The position numbers and the translations under genes were made by a program. A model generated the notes under the pieces. That model saw only the letters and a program-made list of their open reading frames with translations, did not search any database and was not told the origin of the DNA. A stretch of 64,000 nucleotides of DNA from Guillardia theta CCMP2712 (lineage: Eukaryota > Protista > Cryptophyta), in assembly GCF_000315625.1 (NCBI RefSeq), contig NW_005434613.1:55998-119997 (forward strand), written 5' to 3'. This document shows, piece after piece, positions 33,018-62,339 of the stretch. Every line of letters starts with the position of its first letter. Positions within the stretch are counted from its first letter, which is position 1.

Positions 33018-33629
33018 GTGTGATTGTATCTCGCGTCCTAGTACGTCCAGCGACCGGCGACTTCCGGCAGGCAGGAGGCTGATCCTCTATCTCTTCACTG
33101 CATCCGCTCGCCAGGCATCTCCCTTAACTCTTGCTGCACATCTAACAGCCCTGCATGAAAATCTTCTTCAAGAATGGACAATCCTTCCAGAACGGTTATT
33201 GCACACTCAGCATAACTGCGAACTTGACGCAGTCTCATCGTATCTTGACTTGGAACTCTGCTGACATTCTCTTCAATTTGTGTGACTTTCTGACGTCCGA
33301 TGTACAATTTCAGAAACTCGTGGGGGCCGTACGATGGATCGCATTCCACTGCCGTGCCAGTCGGGTCCGATCAGATCGCAATGTAGCCTGGTACGTTTGA
33401 CGAAGCCTCGGAGGAGGCCTTCCTGGCCGTCTTGCTAAGGTCCTCTCATGTCTGGATGCTTGGGTTTCACATCCTCTATGCTACGATTCGGCCTTGAGCA
33501 AAAACTGTCTTGTTGCAGCTGAAGTCGAAACAACAAACTTGTGCTGAGTACTCAAGATCATGGCACCGTCACGCACTCGTTTCAGTAGCAGCAAACATCA
33601 AAAGTAGCTTGTAGGACTGCAGTGTCACT

Positions 33630-35489: not shown

Positions 35490-37715
35490 ATGAGTCGAGC
35501 ATTCCAATTTTCAAGCAAGAATGTTTTCGACAGTTTCAAATCGAATGACAGAGGGTCGCAAGGCAGCTTGCCACGCTCCGCTTCAAGCAACAGCCTCAAT
35601 GGAGATCTCAAACGGACGACCTCGAAAGCCATCGAGATGTTCCGATCGGGTTTGCGCTCCGGCTCTTCAGTGAGGAGGAGGAGCAACGTGAGCTTTACGG
35701 GAGTTCCCAAGAACGACTACTTTCCCTCCAAGAGCAATGTCTTCTGGAGATTCCTAGGCATCGGAGATCGTCAGGGGAATCTGAAAGCATCGCGACTGAT
35801 TCACCCGGAGTCTCCCTTCAACTACACCGTCTCTCTGGTCTCTTCGCTCCTCCTGCTCTACACGGCCATTGTAGTGCAAGTCACTGTCAGCTTCTTCTGG
35901 AATGCGCCTGACTGCTGGAGCTCTCCCACGCTGCCTTTCGACATGTTTGTGGACACTTTCTTTGTCTTCCAGATCTTTTTGACTTTCTTCACTGGGGTTG
36001 AGATTCAAGGCGTGTACGCAGACTCACTGGGGGCGGTTGCTTGGAATTACGTCACTCATGCCTTCATCTTTGATGTATTCACGTCCATCCCTTCTTCGTA
36101 TGTGGAATATTTCGCGGTAAAAGAATGCGGAAGCTCCGGCACCAGCGTCAACATGAACAGCCTCCTAATCATGAGGTGCATAAAACCTCTCAGGTTGCTG
36201 AAGTTGTCGAGGATGTTCAGGATGAAGAAGATTCGTCTCATCCTCGACTCAATCGAGGAATTCTTTCAACTGCCAGGGTTCATGATGAGGATGTTCAGTA
36301 TGCTCGCTGGAATCTCGCTGCTCGTGCACAGTTGTGCTTGTATCTACTGGCTTATCAAGGAGATGACCTTCAGCCAGGACGAGATTTGTCTTTTCCTCTC
36401 CCACTACAACCTCAACTGCTATTCTGGCCTGCTCGAGAAGTATGTCCTCACCATCTACTTCATGAACACAATCTTCACCACAGTTGGCTTCGGCGACATC
36501 ACCCCTGAGAACACAGCTGAGAGGCTCTTCACCATCATCGCCATGTACGCCGGCGTCATGGTCTTCGGCACCATGCTCTCGGAGGTTCAGAGCGCGCACA
36601 TGCACGCGTTCCGCCTGCAGAAGCAGTGCGACCAGGTGCACCATGACGTGAAGGACTTCCTGCGGTCTACCAACGTCCCCAAGGCTGTCAGCAGGCGCGT
36701 GCTGGAGTGGGTGGATCTCGACTATATGGTGAAGATGAGGAGGAACCAGCGGGAGGCAGCTCTCTCCCTCATCCCTCCTCAGCTCCGCATGCCCATCTTC
36801 GATCACCTGCACAAGGAGATGCTGTATGGGATCCCCTTCCTCCGAGACCTGGCGGACATCCACCGCGATCAGTTCCTCCTCAACCTCTTCTCTCTTGCTC
36901 AGCCCATCACTTTCTGCAGCTTCATGCCCATCGCAACGGTGGACGACGCTTGTGACCGTCTCTACATCATCACACACGGCAGCGTCAGCGTCGTTCTGCC
37001 CTCCGGGTCAATCGTCTCCACACTCAACGCTGGCGACTTTTTCGGAGAGAACAGCTTCCTCGGGGAGACAACATGGAGGGGAGAGCACGGGCAGGAGGTC
37101 GACTTCTGTGCTCTGACATCTGTAGTCTGCATGTACATCTTGAAAGAAGACTTCATGCGGCTGCTCCAGTCATTCCCTGGACACATCCACGAGGAGATCG
37201 AGGCTCTCACGCAGGACCTCAAGGAGCTGCGGGAGGAGCAGGCTGCTTCGGATGATCCTCCTACCTCCGTCGCCATCCGCTGGTTCTATCTCTTCCGCAA
37301 GGCCAAGTGCCACATGCTTCACACGGATGGCACGAGAGACCTGCTGATCAAGACGGTTCAGAAGCTCAAGTTTGCATCCATCTTCGGCAAGCACGACACT
37401 CAACGTGGCAAGTTTGAGGTCATCGCGGAGAAGCCAATCCCCGATGAGGAAGAGATAGTTCCGACCTGGGAGGGCAGGGGACCACAGGAAGAGGCGCAGA
37501 GTCACGGAAGCTCCGGGGACATTCTTGTTGCTATTCAGCAGCTGATCAGAGCGGAGCATGACTCGCTGCGCGCTTGCTTCGACCGTCGCATCAGTGAGAT
37601 CACAACTCGCATGGACGCGCTGGAGGAGATGTGCTTCACTGAGGACACGGCCAAGGCAGATACAGCGAGCGTGTCAGGAGGAGATATCCAGCCTGTCGAT
37701 GAGAGATATGCATAG
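35490..37715 (+). CDS. Six-TM K+ channel with CNBD-type domain, paralog B'; intronless
   Basis: 741-aa ORF. S4 IKPLRLLKLSRMFR, pore FTTVGFGDITP, CNBD RLYIITHGSV...FFGE. Colinear with 20734-22929 (HPES, CDR.YII, WRGEHG, RWFY). Confidence 0.92.
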   Translation: MSRAFQFSSKNVFDSFKSNDRGSQGSLPRSASSNSLNGDLKRTTSKAIEMFRSGLRSGSSVRRRSNVSFTGVPKNDYFPSKSNVFWRFLGIGDRQGNLKASRLIHPESPFNYTVSLVSSLLLLYTAIVVQVTVSFFWNAPDCWSSPTLPFDMFVDTFFVFQIFLTFFTGVEIQGVYADSLGAVAWNYVTHAFIFDVFTSIPSSYVEYFAVKECGSSGTSVNMNSLLIMRCIKPLRLLKLSRMFRMKKIRLILDSIEEFFQLPGFMMRMFSMLAGISLLVHSCACIYWLIKEMTFSQDEICLFLSHYNLNCYSGLLEKYVLTIYFMNTIFTTVGFGDITPENTAERLFTIIAMYAGVMVFGTMLSEVQSAHMHAFRLQKQCDQVHHDVKDFLRSTNVPKAVSRRVLEWVDLDYMVKMRRNQREAALSLIPPQLRMPIFDHLHKEMLYGIPFLRDLADIHRDQFLLNLFSLAQPITFCSFMPIATVDDACDRLYIITHGSVSVVLPSGSIVSTLNAGDFFGENSFLGETTWRGEHGQEVDFCALTSVVCMYILKEDFMRLLQSFPGHIHEEIEALTQDLKELREEQAASDDPPTSVAIRWFYLFRKAKCHMLHTDGTRDLLIKTVQKLKFASIFGKHDTQRGKFEVIAEKPIPDEEEIVPTWEGRGPQEEAQSHGSSGDILVAIQQLIRAEHDSLRACFDRRISEITTRMDALEEMCFTEDTAKADTASVSGGDIQPVDERYA

Positions 37716-39565: not shown

Positions 39566-40670
39566 ATGGCGATGGATTTTATCTTATCAAGATCCACAGC
39601 ATTCCAGCTGGTCTCCCTAGTTATTCTCTGTGAGTTTTTCTTCTTCTTTCTCATGCTCTTGCCCTTGCAATCGCTCCAACCTTGTCCTTCTCATTCTTCT
39701 CTTCCTCCTCTACATTGCCTTCTTGTACCTCTTCCCTCCCCATCCTCTCCCCCCTTCCCCTTCCCCTTCCCCTTCCCCTTCCCCTTCCCCTTCCCCTTTC
39801 CCCTCCCTTCGGGTGACATGACCGTACCATTACAGCATGCTTCATCCTCGATCTCGATGCTTCTAGTAGCGGGCCCTCGCACAAGGTCAGTCGCAACCGT
39901 CTCCTCCTGCTTCTCATCCTGTGGCTCCTTCCAGGTCGACAGCAGCCTTGAACTCTTGCATGCGGTAGCGAAGCTGCGGCAGGCGGTTAGAACATCCTCC
40001 CTTCAGGAAGCAGCGGTAAGTTATAAGCCCGATTCCCTTCCCTTCCCCCCCNNNNNNNNNNNNNNNNNNNNNNNNNNNNNNNNNNNNNNNNNNNNNNNNN
40101 NNNNNNNNNNNNNNNNNNNNNNNNNNNNNNNNNNNNNNNNNNNNNNNNNNNCCTCTCTCACTCTCTCTCTCTATGCTCCTTCTCCTCCTCCTCCTCCTTC
40201 CTCCTCCTCCTCCTCCTCCTCCTCCTCCTCCTCCTCCTCCTCCTCCTCCTCCTCCTCCTCTTCCTTCATCTCCTCCTCCTCTTCCTTCATCTCCTCCTCT
40301 TCTCATCTTCTCTTCCTCTTCCTTCATCCCCTCATCTTCTCATACTCTTTCTCCAGCGCTGCCCCTTCGCCTGCAGCCTCAGCTCCATCCCCTCCTCCCC
40401 TGAAGCCCGTGGTACTGACCCTTCCCCTTCCACTTGCCCATCCTGACAGCATGTAGGACTGCTCGGGCGAGCCTGGAGGGTGCTTCGGCACCCACCGCGC
40501 TATCCATCAGCTACTTCCGCTGATCATCTTTGGCTTCATTGGAGCAGGTAGGCGAAGGCAGCCGTTACTGCAGTCCCTAACTCCCTGACTAGGTTTCTAC
40601 TGGTCGTACCTGCGATTTGTTTACCCTCAGGGTCGGGCCAAGAAGGCTGTAGCCGAGCAGCCGAGGACGG
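39566..40670 (+). CDS. Possible small multi-exon hypothetical membrane protein
   Basis: Short exon-like, non-repetitive blocks flanked by AG/GT (MAMDFILSRSTAFQLVSLVIL; VDSSLELLHAVAKLRQ; DCSGEPGGCFGTH...LLPLIIFGFIGA) between microsatellite tracts. Boundaries are uncertain. Confidence 0.3.
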
Positions 40671-41148: not shown

Positions 41149-43876
41149 TCAACCCTCCCCTCTCGTATCTTCCAACATCTTCATCCTTTCATTCCCGTCC
41201 TCCTCTCCCTTCCCCTCTGAACCCTTCTCCTCCCCTCCCTTCTCCTTCTCAAACGGACCGGCCTCGCCTCCTTTCGCTTCTCCTCTGCCGCCTGTGGGAA
41301 AGGTCTCTAGGGAGGGAGGGCTGTACTTCCTGACGTCGATGTAGCCAGCAGGTTTGTGAGCTGTAAAGTGTGACATGAAAGTGAGGACAGGAAGGAGAAT
41401 CGAGAAGAGGAGGACCGCGAGGGGCACAGCAGGAGCAGAGCAGGGAAGGGGGGTGGCAGGAGAAGGGAAGAGAGGAACCTTCAGGAATCGCCCTCATTGA
41501 AGACAAGGGGGAGGAGGAGGAGGAGGAGGAGGAGGAGGAGGAGGAGACAACTTACAGGAGCAGAATTCTCTGAAGGAGGTCCACGTTGCTCTGCGAGCCT
41601 TCCCTCCTCCTACTCCATTTCCTCCTCCATTCTTCAGGTTCGCAGCGTCCATCTTTGAGCGAGAGCCGAACCATGGCTGCTTGCAGCAACTGGAGCAGAA
41701 GGAAGGGGATCAGCGAAGAAGGCGGAGGGCAGGAGGGAGGAAGGGGAAGAGCAGGGAGGGAGGGAGGACATGTTCATGATCGTAGAGAATGGTAGAGAGA
41801 AGAAGAGAGAGAAGAGGGGGGGGGGAGGCAAACATGTAGAGGAGATGCAGGGGGCAGGCAGGAAGGCAGGCAGGAAGGCAGGAAGGCAAGATGGAAGGCG
41901 GGGGCAGGGGCTCTACCCTTGGAAGTCGCAGCGCCGGACGTCGCAGTTGATGTGGCTCGCGTTCTTATGGGTCCCGCAGAACCTGAGCCCAATCTCAAAG
42001 GAAGAAGAGAGGGAGGGAAGGAGGCAGGCAGGAAGTCAGGCTGGGAGCTTCTACTGTCTACTTTGTTCACCTTGCTTGACCTTCACTCATGCCGTAGAGA
42101 GCTCGTCGTTGACATCCGCTAGCCTGCAGGAGGATGAGGAGGACAAGGGGAAGGAGGAGAAGAGGGGGGTGATGGAAACGGGGTGGAGGGAGGAGGGAAG
42201 AGGAGGGAGGAGGAGGAGGACAAGGGGAAGGAGGGAAAGGAGGGAGGAGGGAAAGGAGGGAGGAGGAGGAAGAGGAGGGAGGAGGACAAGGGGAAGGAGG
42301 GAGAGGAGGGAGGAGGAGGAAGAGGAGGGAGGAGGAGGAGGAGGATGGAGGAGGGAGGAGGGAGGGGCTGCACTTCGCATGTTCGGCAACGGACATTCAC
42401 TTGCATCTCCTTCCTGCCGCACAGCAGTGAGTGGAAGTTGAGCAGGGAGGAGGCTGACTTGTGATGCGAGCAGTACAGGGCTCGTCGCCCGGGTTCGCCG
42501 TAGGTGGCTCTGCGGTTGCAGCCCTCCTGAAAGAGGTGACTGAGAGATGAAGGGAACCAGGAAGAGGAGGGAAGGAGGAAGGGAAGGGAAGTGGGGGAAG
42601 GGGAGGGAAAAAAGGGGGAGGGGGGGAGGGAGGGAAGGAGAAGGAAGNNNNNNNNNNNNNNNNNNNNNNNNNNNNNNNNNNNNNNNNNNNNNNNNNNNNN
42701 NNNNNNNNNNNNNNNNNNNNNNNNNNNNNNNNNNNNNNNNNNNNNNNACTAAGAGACGATCTGAGCACACAGTACTGCCTCCTTCGCCTTCTCTCTCCCT
42801 CCTTCTCCTCTCCCCTCCTCCTCCCCTCCTCCTTGCTTCCTCCTCCTTTTCCCACTTTCCTCCTCCTCCTCCTCCTCCTCCTCCTCCTCCTCCTCTGCTG
42901 CGAACCTTGTTCGTGCGGGGATTCCCGCATGTGGCTCTCCTCTTACATCCATTTGTCCTGACAGGATCGTTAGCCCGCAGGCATCGACCAGCAGCAATCG
43001 AGCGAGACCACCTGCACATAGACTTGTCCTTGGCACGAAAGAATTCTCCGGTGTACGTCCCCTCCGGAGATCCCCCGGTGTTCCTGCCGGTCTGCACAGC
43101 TTCCCCACCCAGCCTTGACTGGTTGCACTGTTTCAGCTGCTTGCACTGAAAGCAAATCAGCTTCTCCTTCTCCTCCGCCTTCATCGCCTCCTCGATGTCG
43201 TCCTCCCACTCCAGCATCTCATTGAGAGCCAACAGCTCCTCTTGCTCCTCCTCGTTCATGTTGGCAGGATTCACCATCATGTCAGAGTATGCTTCTGCGA
43301 TCGCCGTTGCGATCTTCGTCCTCTCGTCTCCGGCCTCATACGCCACCGATGAGATGGATCGACCGCAAAGAGCACAGACGTCCTCCTCCTCCTCCTCCTC
43401 CTCCTCAGCGTGAGTAATGATCCTGTCTCCATTTGAGAGCGGATCAGCCTGAGAGCATATCGTCTCCAGAGGCCCTCTACAAACCCCTCCTTGTCTTTGC
43501 TCCCACATCATGTCTGCCTCCCAACCCCCTCCTCGTAGACCCAACACTGGTCGTCTTAGATCGTATCCCAGCACATGGTACCCTCCAAGAGGACGTGAAG
43601 ATTTTACTTCCGCTGCATTCCCTTCACCATGAAACCTGATAGATGGTCAATTCCATGATGACAACGCAGCAAGTCTTACTCGTACCTCAGATCCCGTCTC
43701 GTGATTTCTTCCCTGTTGTGCATGCACTTTGTTGAGGATGAGATGAACAAGGAAGGAAGTCGTGTCTCAGCATGTATGTGATCATGATGAGATGTTTCTG
43801 CCTTACAGCACCTCTCAAGGCTGATCGGTACCATCATGGCAACCAGCGCCATGAGCTCCACAAGGAAACGTACCAT
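41149..43876 (-). CDS. EsV-1-7-type cysteine-rich repeat protein with signal-peptide-like leader and LRGG motif; multi-exon, N-gap inside
   Basis: Repeats GCKRRATCG, GCNRRATYGEPGRRALYCSHHK, RCRTCE..GCQRRALYG, FCGTHK..INCDVRRCDFQGCCKQPWFG, AHKPAGYIDV match the C-x4-C-x3-(A/P)-x-(Y/F)G...C-x2-HK pattern. N-terminus MVRFLVELMALVAMMVPISL. Confidence 0.7.
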
Positions 43877-44799
43877 GCCTGTCCTCACAACTCCTCCTCT
43901 CTCATCCCATGTCTGTGTCTATGATCGCCTGGATCGCATCATACATCTCGCTTCTGTCCCTCTATCAGCCGCTTCCTTCTGCTCACCTCCTTTCTTTCCA
44001 TCCCTCTGCTCCTCTCCTCCCTCCTCTCCTTCCTCCTCCTCATCTCCTTCCTCTCTCCTAGTGCGGCATAATGCGACTGGTGCAAAAATCCCATTGACCC
44101 TCATCCCCGCTCAGTTTATACCCTCATCCCCGCTCAGTATACCCTCATCCGACCTGCCCACCGACCCCTGCACCGACCCATTAAAACTTCATGAAGTGGG
44201 GTACCTGGTGGGGTAGGGGGGTGGTACCTGGCAGAGTGATGACTCTATTTCATAGGGGTGGTAGGTGAGTATGGGTGGTGGTAGGGGGGTGCCTCAGAGG
44301 GTAAGGGGCAGCAGGTATTTTTGGGAGAATAATGCTTATGATTGTATAACTGTCTTTTATATTTATTTGGTGATACGGTGAGGCGGACTTGATTTCGTAT
44401 GGACTTGCGTGGAAGCGAGGACGGGAGAGGCAGCGAGGTGGATGGATGGAGGGAGAGAGAGGAGAGGAGAGGAGAGGAGAGGAGAGGAGAGGAGAGGGGG
44501 AGAGGAGGAGGAGAGGAGGAGGAGGAGGAGGAGGGAGGAGGAGGGGAGGGGAGGGGAGGGGAGGGGAGGGGAGGGGAGGGGAGGGGAGGGGAGGGGAGGG
44601 GAGGGGAGGGGANNNNNNNNNNNNNNNNNNNNNNNNNNNNNNNNNNNNNNNNNNNNNNNNNNNNNNNNNNNNNNNNNNNNNNNNNNNNNNNNNNNNNNNN
44701 NNNNNNNNNNNNCACCACCCTCCTCCTCCTCCTCCTCCTCCTCCTCCTCCTTCTCCTCCTCCTCCTCTCCCCCCCTCGCCCCCTGCGTTCTTACTGTAG

Positions 44800-47038: not shown

Positions 47039-48233
47039 TCAGTCGAGAACCTCGAGGTCGATCGAGGTTGAGGGACCAGCCGTACTCGCCCCCGTCTTCT
47101 TCAGCAGCCGATAGGCGAAGATGGTGGGGGAGAGGAAGGAGGGTTTGACGAAAGAGAGGTCAAGGGGGGAGACCTGAGCTCCCAAGTCACCCACGACAAA
47201 GGCGGCGAAGCACAGAGCACCTTGAAGTGCTTGACGGCTTCTACCTCGAAGAAACTCCTCCTCATCCTGCCGTCCTTGTCATAGAGCCTCCCAGCCCTGC
47301 CCCCCCCCCTCCCCTTAAAAGAATGACNNNNNNNNNNNNNNNNNNNNNNNNNNNNNNNNNNNNNNNNNNNNNNNNNNNNNNNNNNNNNNNNNNNNNNNNN
47401 NNNNNNNNNNNNNNNNNNNNNNNNNNNTCCTCCTCCTCCTCCTCCTCCTCCTCCTCCTCCTCCTCCTCCTCCTCCTCCGTCGTCACCTCCATCCCCCCGG
47501 GATCGAATCGTCGTCGTGGAACAGCAGTACTTCCGTCCTGTCGTCACAGAGCTGCAGCAGACTTGCGAGCAGAAGGGAGAAGGATGGCAGGAAGAACGTG
47601 AGGTCAGATCCGATGATAGAGCTCCAACGCTCTCTTGACAACTCCTCCTCTTCCTCCCCCCACTCGTGTGACCGGATCTCGACCAACACGTCCGGGTTTG
47701 CTGAGACGTTCTGAGCGAGGTACCACAAGGAGGAGGCCCTGTCTGTCGCCACAACTCGCGATGCTCCCGCACGTGAAGCCGCCATGGCGCCGAGCCCATG
47801 GCTAGATCCAAGCTCGAGGACGTTACGGTGGGAGAAGGAGGTGCGATGCGTCTCGACGTAGTTCATGAGCGTCTGCCCCGAGGCTTTACGGGTGCGAAGT
47901 ACAGGAGCATGCAGGGCTCACCAGTGCTGCAGGCCAGAGGAAGAACTCGCCATCGTTGCCTGCCTGCGTGAGACCGCCGTCAGGTCTGTAGGGGAGGAGG
48001 GACGAGGAAGGACGAAGGGAATCATCGAGGAAGGTATGGGGGAGGATCAGACGAGGAGGAAAGAATAGGGTAGGATCGTCGTGTTGAGGAGTGAGAACCT
48101 TGCAGGGATCCTCGTAGAGGACGTAGGGAGTTGCCAGGAGGGCTGAACTAATCTCGCGCCTCCACATTTTGTGTGTCCCATCGAATAGGCCGAAGGAGGA
48201 GAGCGAGTCTATGCTGTTGACCTCCAACCCCAT
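47039..48233 (-). CDS. SAM-dependent protein lysine methyltransferase, METTL21/family-16-like; multi-exon, N-gap inside
   Basis: G.FLWPAAL, VLELGSSHGLGAM (motif I), VVATD, N, EWG, IIGSDL. C-terminal exon VSPLD...IFAYRLLKK...LEVLD*. Confidence 0.85.
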
Positions 48234-51794: not shown

Positions 51795-54700
51795 CTACCT
51801 TCTGCCCTGCACCCTCCCCAGCAGGCTTCTCATCAGCTCCTCGTTTCTCCTCGCCAGCTCCTCCTGTCTGTGTTGTCAGCGGCACAAACACCCGCCCCGC
51901 CCCTTCCCCTCCCCCTCTCACGACCTCTATCCTCCCCATTCCATTCCCTTGTCCTCCTCACCGTCTAACACCCTTCTCTTCCCTTCCCTTCCCCTCCCTT
52001 ACGCTCTCCATCTCCCCTTCCTCCCCCCTCCCTCGCTGCTCCTCACGTTGTGAAGGAGAAGTTCATCCATGGAAGTCATGCGCTGCTTTCGCAGCTGCTT
52101 CAGGTCGTCAGCTGGGCTTCAGCTCGGTCACTCCTCTTACCTCGATGGCTCTCCTCGCCTCCTTCACGTTCTCCTTCACTTCCTCTTGGATCGCATTCAG
52201 CCCATGCAGCGATGCCAGCGCAACCTGAGCAGGTGAGGAACTCAAAGTTAGCCCCCTGCCGACGCCTACTCCTCCTCCTCCTCCCCTGCCCCATGCCCCC
52301 TGCCCCCTGCCCCCTGCCCCCTGCCCCCTGCCCCCTGCCCCCTCCTCCTCCCCTGCCTCCTTCTTGTCCTCCTCCTCTGTCACTCGTTTTCTGTGTCTCT
52401 ATCCTCCTCTGATCCATGCCTGCTCCAGGTTTCTCCCTGCCTTTGGTTGTTTCCTCCCCTTTATCCTCTCATCCATCTCGCTTCCTCTTTCGCTCGCTTC
52501 AAGTCACCCTTCGTCTACTCCATTCTTGCTCCAGTCGCTGTCGTCCTTCCTCCCCCTCCCTCTTATCCTGTGTCGTTCCTCTCTCTCCGTCTTATCCTGT
52601 GTCCTTCCTCCCTCTCCCTCCCGTCTCTCTTCTCTTCCTCTTCCTCACCCCGTCGATATCCACGCTTGAGATTCTCGTCGGATCCTCGCCGAGTCCAAAC
52701 GCCATGAAGAAATCTTGAGCCATCGGCCCCATGTGGCGAACCTGATGAGGCTCGGTCAACCTCCTCCCTCCCCCGTCGACTCCTTCTCCAAGACCCGTCT
52801 CCTCCTCCTTCGCCCCGATCCTTCCTCTCTCCCTCTCCTCTTCCTCCACGTTTCTGATACTCTACTCCTGTGCTGTTCAGCTCCTCTCCATCACTTCCAT
52901 CATGAACAGCTCTCCCTGAACTCACATCATCGCCTTGGTATGACCAAGTGCTGATAGGAACCTCCTTCACAAGTTTCTGCGAGAAAGTGAATGGCAGAGG
53001 GAGGGAGGGAAGGGGGTAGGGAGAGAGGGAGAGAGGGAGGGAGCTGGGAGGGAGGGGGAGAGGGAGGGATGGAGGGAGCTGGAAGGGAGAGGAGCAGCAG
53101 GAACAGGAACAGGGCGGGAAGGGAGGTGAGGTAGGAGACAGGCAGGCAGCGGACCTGCAGGACGAGTCTGGGGTTCACTTGTTGGATGTCTTCCTTACTG
53201 TTCCTGTCCGAAAGGACAGACCACGAGCTGCATGCGACGGTCAGTCCCTGCTCCCCCCCTCCCCCCAGCTCACGCCTCACCTGCTCCTCGGCTCCAGCAC
53301 GACGCCCAGCTCCTTCCCAGAGGGGGTGAAGCCAGTCACGAACTTGATGCCTCCTCTTGCCCGCACGTTGAAGGATCCGTCGGCCTTGGAGCTGAAGGGA
53401 GGAAGCGAGCTGTCTCCCGCTACGCTCCCGTCGGTAAAGACGAAGCTCCCGGTGTGCGCGGCAGGGGCCGCGTTGACGCCCAGGGAGACGGTTGTGGCAT
53501 TGGCGAGGAGGCTACTGCACTTGATAACGTACTCCTCCTCCGGGAAGACGATGCTAGACGGCAGGTTGCCAGTGGTGATGACGGTACCGGACACGTCGGG
53601 GAACGAGATAATGTTCTGGCCTGTCGGGGGGGAGATCTCGAACACCGTGCTTCCTGAGGATACATTGGCTATCCCCTCGGAGAACCGCAAGGGGAACCTT
53701 CCGTGGATCACCGATCTCACCTCCACCTTCCCAGCTCGATCCGGGCTGCCTATGGTGATCAGGCTCCCCGCAAACACGAGCTTGCCCAGCAAGTTCGCCT
53801 CCCCGATGACGTTGAGCGACTCTACGACGTCGGGGAAGTTGCCGGTGGTCAAGATGGTTCCGGTCACGTCCGGCAGGGTGATGACGTGGCTACCCGACGG
53901 CTCCTCGACCCCCAGGGAGATGCTAGAGGCGCCCTGGGAGGTTCCAGGGAAGCGGAGGGGGGAGGAACCAGTCAGAACGGCGTTGACCTCCAACAAGCTG
54001 GCGGCTCCCGGCGTGCCAAAGATGACGTCATCGTTTGTGAAGGAGGCGCCTTTGTAGAAGCTCGCCTGCCCGATGAAGGAAGTGGTCTCGAGAACGTTGA
54101 GCATGTTGCCGGTGGTGAGGACAGTCCCGCTGACGTCAGGGAGAGTGAGCAGCCGGTCCTCCGTCGGGCTCTCAACCCCTATGGAGAGGACGTTGTCCGG
54201 CCAGGATCGGTCGGAGAAGGTCAAGGGGACGGAGCCGAGGAACTGAACGTTGAACCTGACGGAGCTCGCAGTCCGCGGATCTCCTATCAGCAAATTTCCC
54301 CCGATCCTCGTCTCCCCGTCCAGGGACGTCACCCCCAGCACCGACACCTCCTCAAATACCTCAGGCAACGTCCCAGCTGTGACGATCGACCCACTGGAGT
54401 CCGGCAGGTGGACGATAGCTGAGGAGGACGGCTCCGGGAGGTGGAGGGTGAGAGTCGACGACGTCCTGTCCTTGTGCACGAAGGCCAGGGGGAACTGCCC
54501 GACCGCAAAGCCCTGCAGCTCGACCTTGGACCCGGGCTGACCGATGGACGAGTTTCCCATGACCAGCAGCTTTTGCTGCACTGCCAAGCTGCTGAACGCT
54601 GACTCCTTGCTAATGTCCTCGAGGTTCCCTGTGGTGATAAGTGTTCCCGTCACATCCGGCACCACCAGCTCTGCCAGGAACGTGTCCTGCTGCTTGTCCG

Positions 54701-57700
54701 GGTACCACCCCTGCTCCGCGCACTTGAACGCCTCGGCTGCCGTCGGGTCCGCCACGATCTTCGACTCGTCCACGAAGTAGGAGCGCTCGCCGCTGAAGAT
54801 GGGCGAGAGAAGCTGCGTTATTTTCCCCTGATGCCACTCCACCTCCGCCAGGTCGCACAGGCTTGCTGCAGCAGGGGAGAGCTGAGGGCCAAGGAACCGC
54901 ATGGAGTCGTAGGAGTGTCCGGTGGAGACGACGAAGCTGGTCCAGACGCCTTCTGGCAGCACGTCCTTGACTACCAGGACGTCCTCCCAGACCTTGTTGG
55001 AGGTGTTGAGCCCTTGTACGACGGCGCCGACGAGGCTGGCAGAGAAAGAGCTTCTGGGAAGGATACGGACCAGCGAGATAACAGTGGGGCTCACGAAGTC
55101 CATCCCCAGCATGCACTGGGTGACTGTCAGCTGGAGGTCAGCTGGGAGCGCCAGGGCTGTCAAATCGAACACGTCAGAGCTGGCAGTCACTGCGGTACCG
55201 CTGGCTGTGGAGGTCTGGAGGGAGAAGAAGGTGGAGGCGTTGCCATCGTATGCGCAGAAAGGGTCGAGAGGAGATAGGCAGGGAGGCGTGTCGGTGGAGC
55301 AATCCTTGGATCCCAGGATGCCGTTGCAAGCAAAGGAGGTTGAGTTGACAGCCACCTGAGGGGGGAACAAGTCAGGCCGGGCTGGTACGCTTGACAAGCT
55401 AGACTACTCACGTCCTTGACAAACCCGACGGATTCGTTGGACGTCTGCTGCCCTGCCCCATTGCATGTGCAAGTGTCAACGTCGTAGGAACTGCAGAGTT
55501 GACGTCCCGACACGTCCAGGCACTGGTAGAGAGTGCGGTTGTACTGGATGATAGCGCGAGCGTACAGCAGGCCAGCCATCTTAGTCCGAGCTACGAAGCC
55601 TTGGCGGATCGCGTAGTAACCGAGTTCATGGTAGTCTGAGATAGAGAGAGATGAGAGTACATTCCGGCAGACAGTCTGATCGATCTGCTGCGTTCCTTCC
55701 ACAGGCACTCTGAGACAACCAGTCAGACAACCATGAGCGAGAAAGTTAGGATGAGGATGAGGATGAGTATGAGGATGAGGATGAGGGTGAGGGTGAAGGT
55801 GAGGAGGTGGTGGCGGTGGAGGAGGAGGGAGCGAGAAACTGATCTCTAGTACCTGAACGCCACCTTCCCCTTCACTCCAACCGGCAGTGACGGCGCGTCC
55901 GTGCTCAGGTAGTCTCGAAGAGCGATGTCGACACCAAACAGGTGCGGAACGGTCAGCTGGACCCGAGCCGGGCCGGAGTCCGGGTTGCTGAATCGCATGC
56001 TGACGTCACCATCGACCCAGGAGAAGAACTCGAGCGAGGAGTAGCTGGAAGCTGAGCCCAAGGAAATGTTGCCCTGGAGATTGACGTCTCCTCCTACGTA
56101 GAGCTGCTCGTTGGGAATGCGAATGTTGGGCAGACCCAACAGGTTCCCAGTGGTCAGGACAGTCCCAGAGACGTCAGGAAAGGTGATGTTGCGCGGTTGG
56201 GTGGCTGGGATGGTGCAGACTTGAGTGTAGGTGGCGTCGTTCTCGTTGATGAGAAAGTTGAAACAGCCACTGATCCGGGACGTGTTCCCCAGGTTGAGGT
56301 AGGAGAAGGTGGGAGAGCCCGGGCTCCCGAAGTTAACCTCACTCTGGATGTCCAGTCCTTGCAGCTCGATGCTCTTGAAGACAAGATCGTCTGTGTTGCC
56401 CGTCGTAATGACCGTCCCCGTCGCGTCGGGGAAGACAAGCCTCCTGTTGCCCCCCAGCGGCACCTGGTTGATCATCCCGTAGGGTGCCGAGTAGGATGGC
56501 AGAACGCCGTCAACTCGCGTGAGTGGAGCAGTTCCCAGCGCTGCAAAGTCAACAATGGTAACAGGATCGCCAGGCTGTCCACCATGCTGGAAGATGAAGT
56601 TGTTCTTGCCTCGAAGGCCCAGCAGGAGATTGATGTCCTCCAAGTTCCCGCTCGTGATCATGGTGCCATTGGCCTCCGGCAGCTCGATCTTGCGCGTTCC
56701 CGTTGGGATGGAGAAGGACAGGCGAGTCGCCTCGTTCCTCATGTAGAAGTGAACGTCAAACTGCTCGTCCTTCTGCAGCCAGCAGTCGGTGGCGCTCGAG
56801 TAGGCCAGAAGGCACTCGCGCGAGATCTTGTTCAACAGATCCCCCTGTCGATACGAGGTCAAAGAAATCTTGACCGGCGACCCCGGCGTGTCGACCGTAA
56901 CGGCCCCGAGTGAAGAGTCTTTGACGACAGTCAAGGTCGGAGGAACTGAGCACTTGGCCTGGACCGCCAGCCTGCTGACTGCTGGATCGCAGCTGGACCT
57001 GGAGAAGCTCTTGATCCTTGCCGTGCCGATCTTGAGCAGGGTAAGGGCATCCTTGGTGAGAGCGACGGTGCAGCCAGCGCCGAGACAGAGATCCTTGAAC
57101 GCTGCCTCGATTTCTGTCGCGTTGCCGCAGCTCCTTGTGCTGGCGTTGTAGAGGCCGCAAACTCCGTCGACGTTCTCTCCCCAAGACACGAAGCTGATGC
57201 TCGAGATCGAGTCTCCACCAGGGCCGTCGCAGGTGATATTGGCGAGTTGAGAAGTGTTGGCAGGCAGCTCAAGGCAGGTGGACACTCGGGTGAGGTAGTA
57301 AGTCTTGTCGCTGTTGAAGTTGGCGTTCCACAAGGACGGGCTGTCCGACCATCCTGAGCAGAACTGGGACGTTGCGCTACCACAGAAAGTAGTTCCACGT
57401 CCCGAGGAGAGAAACTTCCTGGTCGAATGACTCTGGACGATGACGTCACACGTCTTCGAATCGAGGGGGCACAGGCTGATGTCCCAGCAGGGGATCCCTC
57501 CACACTTGACGGGCAGCAGCTCGAACTCAGTCAGAGGGTCGGAAGGGGAGCTGCTGGATTGGGCCAGCCGCAGCACTTGGCAGTCTGACCTCAGATACCA
57601 CTGGGATATTGGGCAGCTCTTACTGGTGACGATGAGATTGTTTCCGTTGCCGTCCTTCATCTGAACCCTGTAGTACCGAGAGGCGAGCACCAGTCCGCAC

Positions 57701-60700
57701 GTCGGATCCGACCTCTTACACTGCTGGAGGCAGTTGTCAGTGGTGTCGATCCAGAGCGTAGCAGAGCCTGTGATGTTGTACTTCTTGTACTCCGGGAAGT
57801 CGATGAACGGGTTGGCCATGAGCGGCCCAGGCACGTCGTTGACGCAGCTTGTCCTGGGGCGGATGCCCCAGGTGAATGGCTTTGGGACGTCATTGAACTG
57901 ATCCTCAGCAGCTTCGAATCGAGGGGCTGACCGGACGACGATGTCACTTGACAAGTAGCCGACGAAGTTGACCAGGGTCGACCGGTTCGAGCCAAGGACA
58001 ACCGCCCCGTCTAAGAACGCCTTGCCGCTCACGTTGAGGTTCTGTCCTACGAAATGATCGATGTCCTGCAGGTTTCCTGTCGTGATCACTCGGCCGCTGG
58101 CGTCAGGGAACTGCATCGAAGATCTCCGCTGCGACTGGGTGCCGAACTTGAGGACCGTCCTGGAGGCCTCTCGAGTCGTGAACGCAGTCCCGTTGAAGGA
58201 ACCGACATAATCGTAGGGGTTCTGAAAGATGATAGTCTCGTTCATCCTCGGCCTCACACTCAAAATCGCTGCATCCCTATTGCTGTCGTTGGATACCTGG
58301 AACCCTTGGTTGATGTATGAGGGGCCACTGACAAACACACTCGTCAGAGTTCCCGTGTCTTTCGTGATCCCCTCCAGGTTCCCTGTCGTCAGCACTGTCC
58401 CGTCGACGAAGGGAACCACCAGCCTCGACACGGGGTCCATCTTCAGCGTGGGGCTCGAGGGCTCGAACTCCAACACGGTAGTGGACGTGGAAGTGAGGAC
58501 GTTAAGTTGACCCGGCCCTCTGCTAGCATCGTAGGTGTATCCGGCCCGCTGGCCTCCGTGCGGGTAGAGGTAGTGCTTGCTGGGCTCCCTTGGCGGAAGC
58601 CTCACACCGGATTTGAGTTTGTCGGGCCCGAACTCAAAAAGGCCGTTGACCTGCATGTCATTCTGCACTCGCAGGCTCGATACATTGCCGGACTCAAAGC
58701 TGATCTTGTCAAGATTCCCGGTAGTCAAAAGGTCGCCGTCAACGAAGGAAGGCACGGACAAGGTGTTGTTTGCCAGCTTGCTGCTGACCTGTTGGATCCC
58801 GCACGTGCCGTCGTAACATCTTTCAAACTTGAGCGCGGTCGTGCTCTCGTAGCTCGACCAGCCCTTGAGCTCGGCCGAGAGAACGCCCATGGCGGTGATG
58901 TCCTCAAGGTTGCCAGTCGTCACGATGGTGCCGCTGGCATCCGGGATCACCAGCGTCCGAGGCCTTTGAGGCTCAGTGAAGTTCACTGTGGTGGTGAAGT
59001 TGGGTACTTGCGACAGGTCCATGCATCGGAAGCCGAAGTCGTGCTCGTAGCAGGTAAGCGAGGGATCGTTCACACATGCCCCCCCATCCGTACACTCATC
59101 AGAGCTCTTGCATATCTCGCCATTCCTTGAGCCCCCAACGCAGAACTGAGGCCGCGATCGCCGCGCCGGGCAAACCTTCTGGTTGACAGCTGCAGGCGTG
59201 AGGACGCTGCAGCAGCAAACGAAGCACCTCTCAAGGGTTGTGACGCTCGCAAAGGTGTTCTTCCAGGTGTGTTCTGGCGAGTACTGGTTTGCGATTCTAG
59301 TGAAGATGCTCGGGAGGTCTGCGTTCTGTACTGATGCTTCGATGAAGAACTTCGCCAGCTCATTCCTTCCATTCCAAGGAGTGGAGACATTGTGCGACTG
59401 AATGAGTTTCCATAGACTTGCCAGCATGTCACGGGTGGCAGTGCTCGCGTGTATTGTGTCGCTGTAGAAGTCACTCAGCAGGTAGTAAACTCGGTACGCG
59501 TCAAATGTGGTAAGGTTCCAGTTCAGCCCCCGACAGTCTAAGAAGTTCATGTCCAAAGTTTCATTGGAGCAGGTCGTGTTGGAGCAAGAGAAACGTGAAG
59601 GTGGTGGAGGAATGATGTTCCCAAGGTCCTTGTGCCTCCCAGTATACACGAAAGTATCGTCTCCGCGCAACCCTGGGAGCTGATCGATATCCTCACGGTT
59701 TCCCGACGTGATGACTAGGCCAGTGCGATCAGGGAAGGTGATCGACCGCTGCTGACTGGGAGTCTCCAGGCAGAGTTTGGTATACATGCCGTCATTCACA
59801 CCTCCGTCCAGAATTAGCGGGCATTCCTTGTCAATGACTCCGTCGAAGTAGACCTGACTGTTGGTCGAATCCCTCCCGACCTGGATGTAGTCTCCTCTGA
59901 GCTCTGAAAGCATGTTCACCCGCATTGTGGCATTCCACTGACCCTCTGGCTTTGCAAACTCAATGCCGTTAATCAGCTCGCCGTGTAGTGACATGTCGAT
60001 GTTGCGGATCATCGTTAGCGCCTTGCTGATTCCTCCAATGTTCTTGTATGTGAGGAACAGAGAGTCCTTGTGGGCGACAGCATTGGGTGAGCCAACTGTG
60101 AATTCGTAAGCCGCGGTTGATGTCGAGTCCTCCAAGCTCTTTACTAGCACAGCACCGTACTTCTTCTCCGACGCATCGCAACCGAACTGTCCGATAATGC
60201 CGCAAGTATTGTTACAGTCATCGAACACTGGGACATTGCAGGGAGTGGCGGAAACTTTCAAAATGCACTGTCTCATGTTCAAACCTGAGCCGACCTGGTT
60301 GCACTGATCGCCACAACCATTGTTCACTGGGAGTCCGCAAGGGACGGCTAGAGTGTTGACGTTACAGGATCGATCGCAAAACCTCAAAGGCTGCCAATCG
60401 TCCACCCCGTTGCAGCTCTCGAAGTATTGGTCGTTCCATCGAAGAGCTCCCATCTGATCCTTTGTGCACTCGATGTTGTCCACGGGCTGAGAGATGATCA
60501 CACCGTTCACCCTGAGCTCTCCTTCAATCCTCGCTCCAGCTGTTGCTAGCAAGTTGTTCTTGATGATGTACCCTTGATCCGAAAGGGAGACCCAACCTGT
60601 GGCCTCCCCCACAAGAGTGAGAAACAAACATGCCTGTATCCCAAGGAAGTGCCTCTGGCTTCGCAGTCCTGATCCTCCATATCTCAGACGTCTTCTGTCT

Positions 60701-61017
60701 GGCCGGGAACGCTTCATCTGACATAACTTTGATCCTCTATCACATTCCTCCCTTTCACCGCAGCATCTTCCGACATGAATCCCGCTCTTTACGTGCCGTG
60801 GATCATCAGAGCCATGGCATGACTCGCAGGGAGTGCTCGCTGCCTCCTGATGCTCTTCGCTCTCGTTCCTTACTTGCCGACATGTTCGCCCACTGCAGCG
60901 TGCATCCGAACAGTCAGGGGCGAGTTGCTGATGTCGAGGATCGAAACAGCCTCGCGTTCCCGACTCATCTCTGAGTCCGAACGCCTCTAGCAGCGCAGCT
61001 AATGACGGTGGTCTCAT
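51795..61017 (-). CDS. Giant secreted/surface fibre-like protein: 13 tail-fibre-like PDxxGTxxTTGN repeats, Gal-lectin and discoidin-like inserts, C-terminal Peptidase S74 intramolecular chaperone domain + coiled coil; 9 exons
   Basis: Exons 61017(or 60717)-55853, 55709-55412 and 55355-53281, then six small exons: SSWSVLSDRNSKEDIQQVNPRLVLQ|KLVKEVPISTWSYQGDD|VRHMGPMAQDFFMAFGLGEDPTRISSVDIDG|VALASLHGLNAIQEE...|QLRKQ...|EELARRNEEL...GRR*. All junctions are GT-AG and in frame. Confidence 0.88.
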
Positions 61018-61787
61018 TGCCTAGAGTTTGCAGGCAGCAGCTCCCATGCTGCAGCACTTGGACGCCATGACAGTTTCATGTCACGTTGCCTGCGGTCGCA
61101 GCACAAGGTCAGAATGCGGCAACAGTGTAGATGGATCTATGAACATGGTGAGGCCATTACCCGTCTTGCTATCATGCAATTCTCAAGCATGTTGGCCTTG
61201 TAGGGTCGATGAATCTGTGGAGAAAGCTTGAAAGTCAGCTTCAACACGCGACATCAGCTGCAAGTCAGTCGAATGAGCAGAACAGCCCAAGCAATCATCT
61301 AGGACTGGAACATTCGCAGGAGCTCACAAAATGAAACTCATCATAGTTGAAAGTTTAGTCATTCCCCCATCCCACAATCTCGCTAAACAAAAAAATTCAT
61401 TATCCGATCGTCACTCAAAGCATTGCTCCCGTCACAGCTCTACTGGACAAGTGAGACAAATATCAACTTCCTCCCTTCTCTCAGCAGCTCCCATCCCGCT
61501 TTCTCGCTCCTCCTTTCACTAGTGTTTCCCCTCCTCTCCTCTGCCTCCTGCTGTCCCTTCCCCTCCCCCCCGTCTGCCTCCCCGCCATCGGGAATGACTA
61601 CCGAGCGGCGTTTCACCTGAACAGCTTCTGGGGCCCCTCATCCCCACACATACAGACACCTGAGGCGGGCCGTGAAATTGTCTTGTTTTTTTAATTTTTT
61701 TTAATTTTTTTTCCTCCTTCGCAAACTTCAGCCAAGGGGGCAATGGGGAGAGGAGACTAGGCGAGGACAGGAGATGAGAGAAAGAGA

Positions 61788-62177
61788 GTGTCAGTGTCAG
61801 TATCAGTATCAGTATCAGTATCAGTATCAGTATCAGTATCAGTATCAGTATCAGTATCAGTATCAGTATCAGTATCAGTATCAGTATCAGTATCAGTATC
61901 AGTATCAGTATCAGTATCAGTATCAGTATCAGTATCAGTATCAGTATCAGTATCAGTATCAGTATCAGTATCAGTATCAGTATCAGTATCAGTATCAGTG
62001 TCAGTGTCAGTGTCAGTATCAGTATCAGTATCAGTATCAGTGTCAGTGTCAGTATCAGTATCAGTATCAGTATCAGTATCAGTATCAGTATCAGTGTCAG
62101 TGTCAGTGTCAGTATCAGTATCAGTATCAGTCTCATTATGAGTATGAGTATGAGTATGAGTATGAGTCTCAGTCTCA
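61788..62177. repeat. (TCAGTA)n hexanucleotide microsatellite with TCAGTG/TGAGTA variants, followed by (GAGCAG)n
   Basis: Direct inspection. Confidence 0.97.
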
Positions 62178-62202
62178 GTATCGAGATCAAGATCAACATC
62201 CA

Positions 62203-62301
<99 letters not shown>

Positions 62302-62339
62302 TAAGGGCAGGAGCAGGAGTAGGGGCAGGAGCAGGAAAC

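Follow-up and report, generated by a model that had tools for sequence, protein, structure and literature searches.

The nuclear gene GUITHDRAFT_142133 of Guillardia theta CCMP2712 has nine exons, and its product combines 13 copies of a phage-type fibre motif with a lectin-like module and a C-terminal Peptidase_S74 domain. On balance it is probably a host gene, derived from a tail-fibre gene of phage or virus type, whose product would be a secreted, self-chaperoned, homotrimeric glycan-binding fibre. Public annotation places the locus on JH993025.1 of GCA_000315625.1 and lists its product merely as a hypothetical protein of 2651 aa; the corresponding UniRef name begins 'Peptidase S74 domain-'. 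A sequence-only reading of the 64-kb stretch of DNA analysed here (the window) had presented part of this gene as a surface-fibre system of which it knew no description. The protein was already in public databases, very similar S74-tipped giant fibres have been described in cryptophyte-integrated polinton-like viruses (PLVs; PMC12220804), and MYRF is a eukaryotic precedent for the S74 domain. Nor is there a system: one gene accounts for all of it.

Exon structure and the Peptidase_S74 domain

All parts of the gene given below lie on the minus strand of the window. The two open reading frames from which the sequence-only reading started, 55846-61017(-) and 53277-55397(-), are present as claimed; they are exons 1 and 3 of the same gene, bridged by a 298-nt exon. 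The end assigned to the feature, 53281, was too early: the gene continues to 51795 through six more small exons, and the whole coding region (51795-60717) runs from the favoured start, ATG 60717, to a TAG stop at 51797-51795. The public model starts at 61017, 100 codons upstream. Exon 1 (55853-60717) holds motif copies 1-8; exon 2 (55412-55709; 99 codons plus one base) encodes a Cys-containing linker, with which residues 174-262 of protein P0001 align; exon 3 (53281-55355) encodes a jelly-roll domain, motif copies 9-13 and a G-S-F-V-F-x-D ... N-S-F-N-V-R-A-x-G-G block. The Peptidase_S74 domain begins in exon 4 (53155-53227) and continues through exon 5 (52926-52976) and exon 6 (52649-52741, with an R-H-M-G-P-M-A-Q-D block) to exon 7 (52141-52224), where the chaperone domain ends and the coiled-coil tail starts; exon 8 (52047-52094) encodes more of the tail and exon 9 (51795-51863) its end and the stop codon.

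The eight introns, which fall within 51864-55852, are of the spliceosomal GT-AG type, with donor and acceptor dinucleotides read off the sequence: introns 1-4 at 55710-55852, 55356-55411, 53228-53280 and 52977-53154, and introns 5-8 at 52742-52925, 52225-52648, 52095-52140 and 51864-52046. Their junctions agree with the public model and with homologues that read straight across them. The spliced model is an unbroken ORF identical to residues 101-2613 of P0183, the spliced public product of GUITHDRAFT_142133, to whose numbering Ser2519, Lys2524 and W141 refer.

The six small exons (53227-51795) downstream of the two ORFs thus encode a Peptidase_S74 domain followed by a charged coiled coil. The domain is visible to Pfam only after splicing: PF13884, the sole Pfam match on P0183, scores 26.6 bits against a gathering cut-off of 22 (residues 2519-2565) and 23-33 bits on homologues, while single S74 exons are too short to give a Pfam match and the two unspliced ORFs returned nothing useful from Pfam or PHROGs. 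Exon 4 encodes both the putative cleavage serine, S2519 (codon 53211-53209), and K2524, the lysine of the putative dyad (codon 53196-53194). They lie in the string S-D-R-N-S-K, in which S, D and K are shared by 90% or more of the 14 family members aligned; an S-x-x-x-x-K catalytic spacing rule is known from K1F endosialidase and MYRF. A profile of the family's C-terminus matched MYRF 7dc3 (E 0.06) and GA-1 3gud (E 0.2) in the PDB at the expected positions, both below significance.

In phages, Peptidase_S74 serves tail fibres and tailspikes as their intramolecular chaperone, and a tail fibre equipped with such a self-cleaving folding domain is a viral hallmark; in all characterised phage cases known to us, the domain directly follows a trimeric fibre or spike. 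The algal protein resembles K1F endosialidase, the T5 L-shaped tail fibre pb1 and the GA-1 neck appendage in carrying S74 at its C-terminus, in having Ser and Lys five residues apart, and in placing a repetitive beta-rich region before the domain and a helical tail after it. The phage proteins trimerise, fold their shaft and then cut themselves, and by analogy the same working mode would be expected of the algal one. Unlike them, it is the product of a eukaryotic nuclear gene with eight introns and an ER signal peptide, is 3-5 times longer, contains Cys-rich modules and sequons, and stands outside any virion gene set. MYRF and Dictyostelium MrfA, membrane-tethered transcription factors with a phage-derived ICA/S74 domain, are likewise cellular eukaryotic genes that keep the phage chaperone and autoprocessing domain. 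The algal protein differs from them in having neither an Ndt80-type DNA-binding domain nor a transmembrane helix after S74; upstream of S74 it is still fibre-like, so that the ancestral fibre role has apparently been retained.

Because the protein ends in this intramolecular chaperone domain, which the sequence-only reading had missed, the trimeric secreted fibre proposed there is now the interpretation that fits best. A 40-aa signal peptide would direct a precursor of roughly 2,510 aa into the ER. Three Peptidase_S74 domains, aided by the coiled-coil tail, would associate at the C-terminus, and from this nucleus the preceding repeat units would fold into a homotrimeric beta-rich shaft. The chaperone would then be cut off by the Ser2519/Lys2524 dyad, leaving a fibre of ~2,380 residues per chain. 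Such a fibre would be disulphide-rich and N-glycosylated, with shaft segments (the 13 motif copies) alternating with globular inserts, among them a discoidin/CBM62-like sugar-binding jelly roll near its distal C-terminal end. Exported to the cell surface, it might act as a glycan-binding adhesin or as a coat fibril. The sequence-only reading had suggested flagellar hairs, periplast fibrils or prey adhesion as candidate sites or roles.

The repeat, its phage relatives and the intervening modules

The 13 motif copies, eight in the long ORF and five in the short one, are all in frame, and their number and distribution are as first reported. Eleven are found by the pattern P-[DE]-x-x-G-x-h-h-T-[TSA]-G, and the looser h-h-T-t-G-N adds two variants, VPSFVDGDLLTTGN and VPFVDGTVLTTGN; no other frame or position of the 64-kb window contains the motif, nor did it turn up in 2000 shuffles of the protein. 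In exon 1 the pattern search places copy 1 (ITFPDRTGLVITSGN) at 59695-59742, copy 2 (LVIPDASGTIVTTGN) at 58906-58953, copy 3 (variant, SVPSFVDGDLLTTGN) at 58711-58761, copy 4 (variant, VVPFVDGTVLTTGN) at 58375-58422, copy 5 (MQFPDASGRVITTGN) at 58069-58116, copy 6 (IELPEANGTMITSGN) at 56641-56688, copy 7 (LVFPDATGTVITTGN) at 56392-56439 and copy 8 (ITFPDVSGTVLTTGN) at 56140-56187. Copies 9 to 13, in exon 3, are at 54621-54668, 54366-54413, 54102-54149, 53835-53882 and 53562-53609. Seven of the 13 start regular units of 83-91 aa: three, of 83-88 aa, at the end of exon 1 (55933-56697), and four, of 85-91 aa, at 53619-54677. The remaining six are either bare motifs or truncated units, including a truncated fifth unit at 53403-53618. 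To call the protein built of 13 repeats was therefore too simple: Cys-rich modules and the jelly roll lie between the motifs.

By sequence comparison, the algal repeat is homologous to a repeat of ~50 aa found in tail-fibre and baseplate proteins of marine phages, and its initial description as a repeat of phage-fibre type holds. A search of 5.8e9 proteins matched the phage protein P0006 to exon 3 (E 5e-14), and BLASTP aligned the two in several registers (6e-17 to 2e-14). P0006, encoded in a phage contig, is a tail-fibre protein (phrog_38058 at 1.5e-45, Mtd_N); its matches to solved structures (PDB) are outside the repeat only. In IMG/VR, more than 270 loci have the motif in tail-fibre ORFs. 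Searches elsewhere gave single weak matches, to HTVC008M (tblastn against GenBank phages) and to a metagenome-assembled genome (scan of GTDB genomes), and neither raw ORF hit a tail-fibre PHROG at E <= 0.1. What ties the window's protein to phages is its similarity, by HMMER and BLAST, to phage proteins from metagenomes.

The core common to the algal repeat and that of tail-fibre or 'baseplate wedge initiator' proteins of marine T4-like phages (phrog_38058, phrog_8215; P0006, Pelagibacter phage HTVC008M) is a strand ending (D/E)-P-(T/S)-x-x-x-x-I-T-L-P-D-x-S-G-T-h-h-T-T-G-N-L. Phage units are ~52 aa long and occur in 1-5 copies per protein, whereas the algal units, at 83-91 aa, have an extra segment of ~35-40 aa. 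The phage repeat proteins have an Mtd_N-type N-terminus and, in the cases examined, no S74 domain, unlike the algal protein.

Between leader and first motif, a conserved N-terminal mature region (59758-60597) comprises a beta-strand segment, a G-x-x-R-W-N...F-E-x-C-x-G...W motif and a Cys module with about 10 invariant cysteines in an alignment of 10 homologues. Among these 10 aligned N-terminal regions, full-length homologues are 38-60% identical. An AF2 model of the N-terminal 340 aa is of low confidence (mean pLDDT 44.6), and residues 141-690 and 990-1445 of P0183 have no sequence match in the PDB.

The last five units are preceded by a galactose-binding-type jelly roll of the discoidin, CBM62 and CBM32 kind (54828-55115), which AF2 models at pLDDT 80-92. 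It is the sole confidently modelled part of exon 3, the repeats of this exon staying below 50 in the monomer. Foldseek places CBM62 2yfu first (E 8e-6, TM 0.59-0.60), followed by CBM32, F-lectins and F5/8 type C, and a BFVD fold search gave mostly unnamed matches driven by the same discoidin-like domain. By sequence, the PDB offers a weak match, 2yb7, and Pfam, F5_F8_type_C included, none at E <= 1; the likeness to bacterial F5/8-type-C proteins shows only via the family profile and BLASTP, in which P0060, a multi-F5/8-type-C protein, matches repeatedly over stretches of 26-31% identity.

The protein contains 68 cysteines and 32 N-x-S/T sequons. The many sequons claimed earlier are there, but against 23 +/- 4 in shuffled sequences the enrichment is modest. 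A transmembrane anchor was considered and rejected, since no hydrophobic window was found: 19-aa Kyte-Doolittle means are nowhere above 1.6. Without its signal peptide and S74 domain, the predicted fibre has no obvious anchor to the cell.

Another possibility is that the gene encodes a secreted multi-domain lectin or matrix glycoprotein and no fibre at all, its units being independent small beta domains and its S74 domain a trimerising, self-releasing device as in MYRF; MYRF/MrfA is an example of eukaryotic reuse of the domain for proteolytic processing (PMC3828593). Globular lectin-like and Cys-rich modules do make up much of the protein, the 35-40-aa insertion sets the algal unit apart from the phage one, and monomeric AF2 gives no fibre model. 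We nevertheless consider this unlikely. Phage tail-fibre and baseplate proteins are the only ones in which relatives of the repeat can be identified, S74 is established in characterised phage proteins as directly following a trimeric fibre or spike, and no part of the family is better conserved than the block between the last motif and S74, which is what one would predict if folding begins in that block.

Genomic setting, orthologues and viral fibres

The gene sits on a 495-kb scaffold with eukaryotic genes on either side and no assembly gap inside it. Its annotated neighbours within 10 kb are Desulfoferrodoxin, DUF726, Methyltransf_16 and EsV_1_7_cys; Pfam on 94 stop-to-stop flanking ORFs and on the large ORFs returned cellular families only, and an Rfam search of the window had no match. 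The locus involves no toxin gene. Because there are eight GT-AG introns and cellular neighbours, contamination and recent viral insertion are both disfavoured.

Orthologues, which come from other, uncultured eukaryotes, reach 5,233 aa and have the same C-terminal architecture as the G. theta protein. Of the contexts examined, those of L001 and L166/L167 place the orthologue among cellular genes such as RabGAP, TBP and WD40; other contexts are uninformative. On the candidate transcript contig L085, no poly(A) was found. Judged from its sequence and setting, GUITHDRAFT_142133 clearly appears to encode a full fibre-type protein that is host-owned, with introns, signal peptide, cellular neighbours and conserved orthologues.

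Fibres of this general build are familiar from PLVs. Those that have integrated into the genomes of cryptophytes and other protists commonly code for modular fibres as long as 3.9k aa with a C-terminal Peptidase_S74, sometimes with discoidin (PMC12220804), and particles of the PLV PgVV-14T hold an L-shaped-tail-fibre-like protein (bioRxiv 10.1101/2022.07.28.501842). The algal protein is like these PLV and virophage fibres (PMC12220804; PgVV-14T Ltf) in being giant (over 1000 aa) and modular, in having carbohydrate-binding modules, discoidin among them, and in ending with Peptidase_S74. PLVs, if few, have been reported in G. theta, and the EsV-1-7 Cys-motif gene lies ~8-10 kb from the fibre gene. 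The gene could instead belong to an endogenous virus, be it a polinton-like virus, a virophage or a giant virus, as its virion fibre gene, either in a still integrated element or as a decaying relic, and serve attachment of the virus and no function of the alga.

We rate this as slightly less likely again than a matrix lectin. Four of the eight spliceosomal introns interrupt the coding stretch of the chaperone domain with its flanks; families of capsid, packaging ATPase, polymerase or integrase were not found in the 94 flanking ORFs or among the annotated neighbours within 10 kb; gene GC content resembles that of the rest of the window; the ER signal peptide is kept across orthologues; and these adjoin cellular genes in other eukaryotic contigs. 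IMG/VR holds no close relatives: a pattern-based search with the 477-aa C-terminal part gave no tblastn-confirmed relative, and matches obtained with the family alignment (pattern-based, not exhaustive) were 27-35% identical and confined to the motif region. Membership of a PLV was rejected, hallmark genes not being found near the gene. Unlike PLV fibre genes, then, the algal gene is outside any recognisable PLV and has spliceosomal introns and a signal peptide; PLV fibre modules such as Laminin_G_3, collagen and BppL also differ from the algal repeat and N-terminal Cys-rich domain.

To our knowledge, the eukaryotic S74 domain is otherwise known only in MYRF transcription factors and, recently, in integrated-PLV fibre genes. 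It is quite possible, if less likely than not, that cryptophytes and some other protists domesticated a phage-type tail fibre with its chaperone as their own structural or adhesive surface filament, for example as periplast coat fibrils or flagellar appendages. If so, this would be the first cellular eukaryotic structure built by the phage S74 'fold, trimerise, self-cleave' mechanism, and a second exaptation of the domain, independent of MYRF and with the fibre function kept. Should the protein prove to be surface-expressed, it would supply a specific candidate molecule for the fibrillar structures on the cryptophyte surface, about which little is known. It would also be a clean case for following how a viral attachment device turns cellular, and a eukaryotic model of how S74 drives the assembly of trimers along the secretory pathway.

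The leader and the remaining alternatives

The predicted 40-aa signal peptide (60598-60717) has a basic n-region, a hydrophobic core of ~14 aa and the small residues A-T-G before W141. The sequence-only reading had chosen ATG 60717 for this leader, and in comparison with orthologues it behaves as a signal peptide: P0186 and P0189 have leaders of 16-17 aa straight before a conserved W-(I/V)-(A/S)-L-S-x-x-G-Y, and L001 is similar. The start at ATG 60717 is supported because the orthologues begin with short classical signal peptides before the same Trp. With the public start at 61017, the hydrophobic leader stretch would be internal.

In cryptophytes, proteins are sent through the inner plastid membranes by an aromatic residue at +1, right behind the signal peptide. 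With W following the predicted cleavage site in all orthologues, the leader could be read as the signal-peptide half of a bipartite targeting sequence, its Trp at +1, and the protein as one of the complex plastid or periplastidal space. This seems very improbable: what follows the W is a conserved structured domain and not a variable, Ser/Thr-rich transit peptide, and the size, the 68 cysteines, the sequons and the lectin domain fit an extracellular protein.

Contaminating bacterial or phage DNA, for which the phage-like repeat and S74 domain might speak, or a chance low-complexity repeat, is of negligible probability: the motif count is far beyond chance, the scaffold is long and gap-free across the gene with eukaryotic genes flanking it, and both ideas are refuted by the GT-AG intron structure, which intron-free homologues bear out.

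Gene structure, repeat layout and start

Both minus-strand ORFs of the sequence-only reading (55846-61017 and 53277-55397) are present and translate as described, and its count of 13 tail-fibre-like motifs, eight in the first ORF and five in the second, is exact: the core, taken strictly as P-[DE]-x-x-G-x-h-h-T-[TSA]-G, occurs 11 times, and a looser h-h-T-t-G-N pattern adds two variants with P-S-F-V-D-G and P-F-V-D-G in place of P-D. Translating the 64-kb window in six frames shows no copy elsewhere, nor did any appear in 2000 protein shuffles. Seven copies begin regular units of 83-91 residues, three of which close the long ORF and four of which lie in the short one; the other six are motif-only or truncated units, set between non-repetitive stretches. 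The “many” N-x-S/T sites also noted do number 32, but this is a mild excess over chance (23 +/- 4 in shuffles). The protein has 68 cysteines, grouped in a few modules.

Canonical splice signals lie between the two ORFs, and joining 60717-55853, 55709-55412 and 55355-53281 (minus strand) keeps the frame. The gene does not end at 53281, as had been proposed: exons 53227-53155, 52976-52926, 52741-52649 and 52224-52141 carry the frame on downstream. This seven-exon model (2513 residues) is stop-free, with GT-AG at all junctions and no assembly gap within the gene; metagenomic homologues run uninterrupted over the junctions of introns 1-2 (P0001) and 3-6 (P0003 and P0002). A database search returned the gene's own public protein (GUITHDRAFT_142133, Guillardia theta CCMP2712, 2651 aa; its numbering is used here), a “hypothetical protein” at NCBI with a UniRef name starting “Peptidase S74 domain-”; the literature searched held no mention of the gene. 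Residues 101-2613 are identical to the spliced model; the public version is longer by 100 N-terminal residues (ATG 61017) and by two 3' exons, 52094-52047 and 51863-51798, and its stop codon is 51797-51795. The locus belongs to scaffold JH993025.1 of GCA_000315625.1, so the window is cryptophyte nuclear DNA; it is not of human origin, and the locus concerns neither a toxin nor an effector.

The leader at ATG 60717, read earlier as a signal peptide, runs from a basic stretch through ~14 residues of hydrophobic core to A-T-G preceding Trp141. Orthologues bear this out: P0186 and P0189 start with Met and a hydrophobic leader of 16-17 residues, with A-G-S directly before W-(I/V)-(A/S)-L-S-x-x-G-Y, and a similar leader is found in P0185 (contig L001). 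No transmembrane helix is predicted, no 19-residue window of the whole protein exceeding a Kyte-Doolittle mean of 1.6. Because the orthologue leaders precede the same conserved Trp and no such helix is predicted, comparison favours a cleavable signal peptide and the start at 60717. The annotation probably sets the start too far 5', since the 100-codon extension (61017-60718) is absent from orthologues that start directly with the leader.

The repeat and the chaperone domain

Searched against 5.8 billion proteins, exon 3 finds close eukaryote-type homologues and, more distantly, proteins that include P0006 (E 5e-14) and P0010. The contig of P0006 is phage-like and also holds collagen-like and transglycosylase genes and many genes for 2OG-Fe(II) oxygenases; P0006 has Mtd_N at its N-terminus, and matches tail-fibre PHROG 38058 at 1.5e-45 as well as the “baseplate wedge initiator” PHROG 8215. 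In pairwise alignment its unit is ~52 aa long, a strand followed by (D/E)-P-T-x-D-R-T-I-T-L-P-D-x-S-G-T-h-h-T-T-G-N-L-x-D-I; the algal unit has this core in common, plus ~35-40 additional residues. A pattern scan of IMG/VR gave at least 600 matches, at least 271 of them confirmed, with one to four copies in the ORFs tallied, and the motif-bearing ORFs sampled are tail-fibre proteins. Consistent with the same link, the “baseplate wedge initiator” in Pelagibacter phage HTVC008M gives a weak tblastn match. The earlier statement that such repeats typify phage fibres is thus supported, the repeat being homologous to one in phage tail-fibre proteins; as a caveat, the window protein itself reaches no tail-fibre PHROG. 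No solved structure covering the repeat was found by sequence. On the phage contigs, the P0006 fibre gene is followed by four 2OG-Fe(II) oxygenase genes in L002 (13615-18073) and nine in L003 (4086-11353), with other small genes between.

Exons 4-7 encode a domain that the sequence-only reading overlooked, Peptidase_S74 (PF13884, “chaperone of endosialidase”). It scores 26.6 bits in the spliced protein against a Pfam cut-off of 22 (residues 2519-2565), a cut-off also passed by homologues P0001-P0003 and P0041-P0043, and the C-terminal 126 residues align gap-free with P0003 at 66% identity. The domain starts with S-D-R-N-S-K, its Ser, Asp and Lys at least 90% conserved across 14 aligned members of the family; in K1F endosialidase and MYRF, the autocatalytic dyad is a Ser and the Lys five residues on, and the cut falls immediately before the Ser. 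Against solved structures the S74-region profile gave weak matches (MYRF 7dc3, E 0.06; GA-1 neck appendage 3gud, E 0.2). By sequence, the protein is a member of the S74 family. A charged, coiled-coil-like tail follows the domain. The 424-nt intron splitting the S74 domain contains a (CAGGGGG)n microsatellite (52300-52360).

Lectin-like module and possible assembly

In an AF2 model of exon 3 (24-sequence alignment), only residues ~80-175, counted within exon 3, are confident (pLDDT 80-92), and as modelled this segment is a galactose-binding-type jelly roll: the top Foldseek match is CBM62 2yfu (E 8e-6, TM 0.59-0.60), with CBM32 modules, F-lectins and F5/8 type C domains next in rank. A weak sequence match to 2yb7 is in line with the assignment, as are repeated BLASTP matches (26-31% identical) to P0060, which itself has several domains of F5/8 type C; named matches in the BFVD viral library include a Bathycoccus virus F5/8 type C protein and a cyanophage baseplate wedge initiator. 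The repeat units stay below pLDDT 50, which could reflect an obligate oligomer or merely a thin alignment, and is proof of neither. On another eukaryotic contig, a piece of a fibre-gene orthologue (L166, 14078-14800) has a weak match to SUEL-type (galactose/rhamnose) lectins, which points to exchange of lectin modules among family members. The mature N-terminus is conserved and includes a module with ~10 invariant cysteines; its AF2 model was too poor for use, and PDB sequence searches with residues 141-690 and 990-1445 gave no matches.

The reading we favour, at slightly better than even odds, is a secreted, self-chaperoned, trimeric, glycan-binding fibre owned by the host. By analogy with S74 proteins of phages and with MYRF, the precursor would enter the ER, and its C-terminal chaperone domains would trimerise and direct the units before them to fold as a trimeric shaft; cleavage by the Ser/Lys dyad would then free the chaperone (~130 residues), and a long, disulphide-rich, glycosylated fibre, with its sugar-binding module near the distal end, would be exported and presumably held at the surface by the conserved N-terminal domain bound to another component. 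The algal protein resembles an S74-tipped phage tail fibre in this putative mode of working and in sequence-level family criteria, whereas its gene lies outside a virion-gene context; unlike MYRF, it has neither a DNA-binding domain nor a transmembrane helix. A non-fibrous secreted lectin, with S74 serving for processing alone, is unlikely.

Host gene or viral element

The main rival is that the gene encodes the fibre of a viral element of the integrated polinton-like virus (PLV) type. According to a 2025 study, PLVs integrated in cryptophyte and other protist genomes commonly encode modular fibres that reach 3.9k aa and end in Peptidase_S74, sometimes with discoidin modules, and G. theta is reported there to carry a few PLVs (PMC12220804); a tail-fibre-like protein occurs within particles of the Phaeocystis PLV PgVV-14T (bioRxiv 10.1101/2022.07.28.501842). 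The algal protein shares the overall design of these fibres, but differs in context, gene structure and module set. Several points argue against a viral element here: the gene has eight spliceosomal introns, four of them splitting the stretch of chaperone domain plus flanks, its GC is like that of the remainder of the window, and its predicted ER signal peptide is conserved. Capsid, ATPase, polymerase and integrase families are absent from 94 flanking ORFs, the large ORFs and the annotated neighbours up to 10 kb away (Desulfoferrodoxin, DUF726 and Methyltransf_16 genes, plus one with an EsV-1-7 Cys motif). Orthologues on other eukaryotic contigs also sit amid cellular genes (RabGAP-TBC in L001; TBP, WD40 and TIG in L166/L167), and pattern-based searches of IMG/VR gave no close relatives, the best matches being 27-35% identical in the motif region only. 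On this evidence a viral owner is distinctly improbable; plastid targeting, or an artefact, is more improbable by far.

Among 1.84 billion representatives, the family profile had 1842 matches at E <= 1e-3, many owed solely to the jelly roll; the full C-terminal architecture is common to ~20 proteins (up to 5233 aa) from metagenomes and other assemblies, G. theta being the sole named organism among the matches returned, and GTDB genomes gave a single weak match. The S74 annotation was already public and related viral fibres are published; the gene may be described as a host-owned, intron-bearing, predicted secreted version of a viral fibre, a solid observation for which exaptation is an attractive angle.

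The EsV-1-7 Cys-rich motif gene (fibre-locus record L169, 27507-29105) lies downstream of the fibre gene at a distance of ~8-10 kb, close to 42-44 kb in the window. This motif family was first found in a brown-algal virus; no further viral signal was found around the gene. Just upstream of the fibre gene are two hexanucleotide arrays, (AGTATC)x66 (61787-62182) and (GAGCAG)x22 (62203-62336), which account for overlapping ORFs there. Runs of N mark assembly gaps at 8851-8950, 28388-28487, 30844-31773, 40052-40151, 42648-42747, 44613-44712 and 47328-47427; the 930-N gap (30844-31773) is the reason for an apparent GC of 0.295 and for long ORFs in every frame at 30-32 kb. A 25-nt satellite (27 copies, 92% identity) occupies 32345-33021, and two cyclic-nucleotide-binding ion-channel paralogues (Ion_trans plus cNMP_binding) lie ~13 kb apart on opposite strands, at 20734-22929 (-) and 35490-37715 (+).
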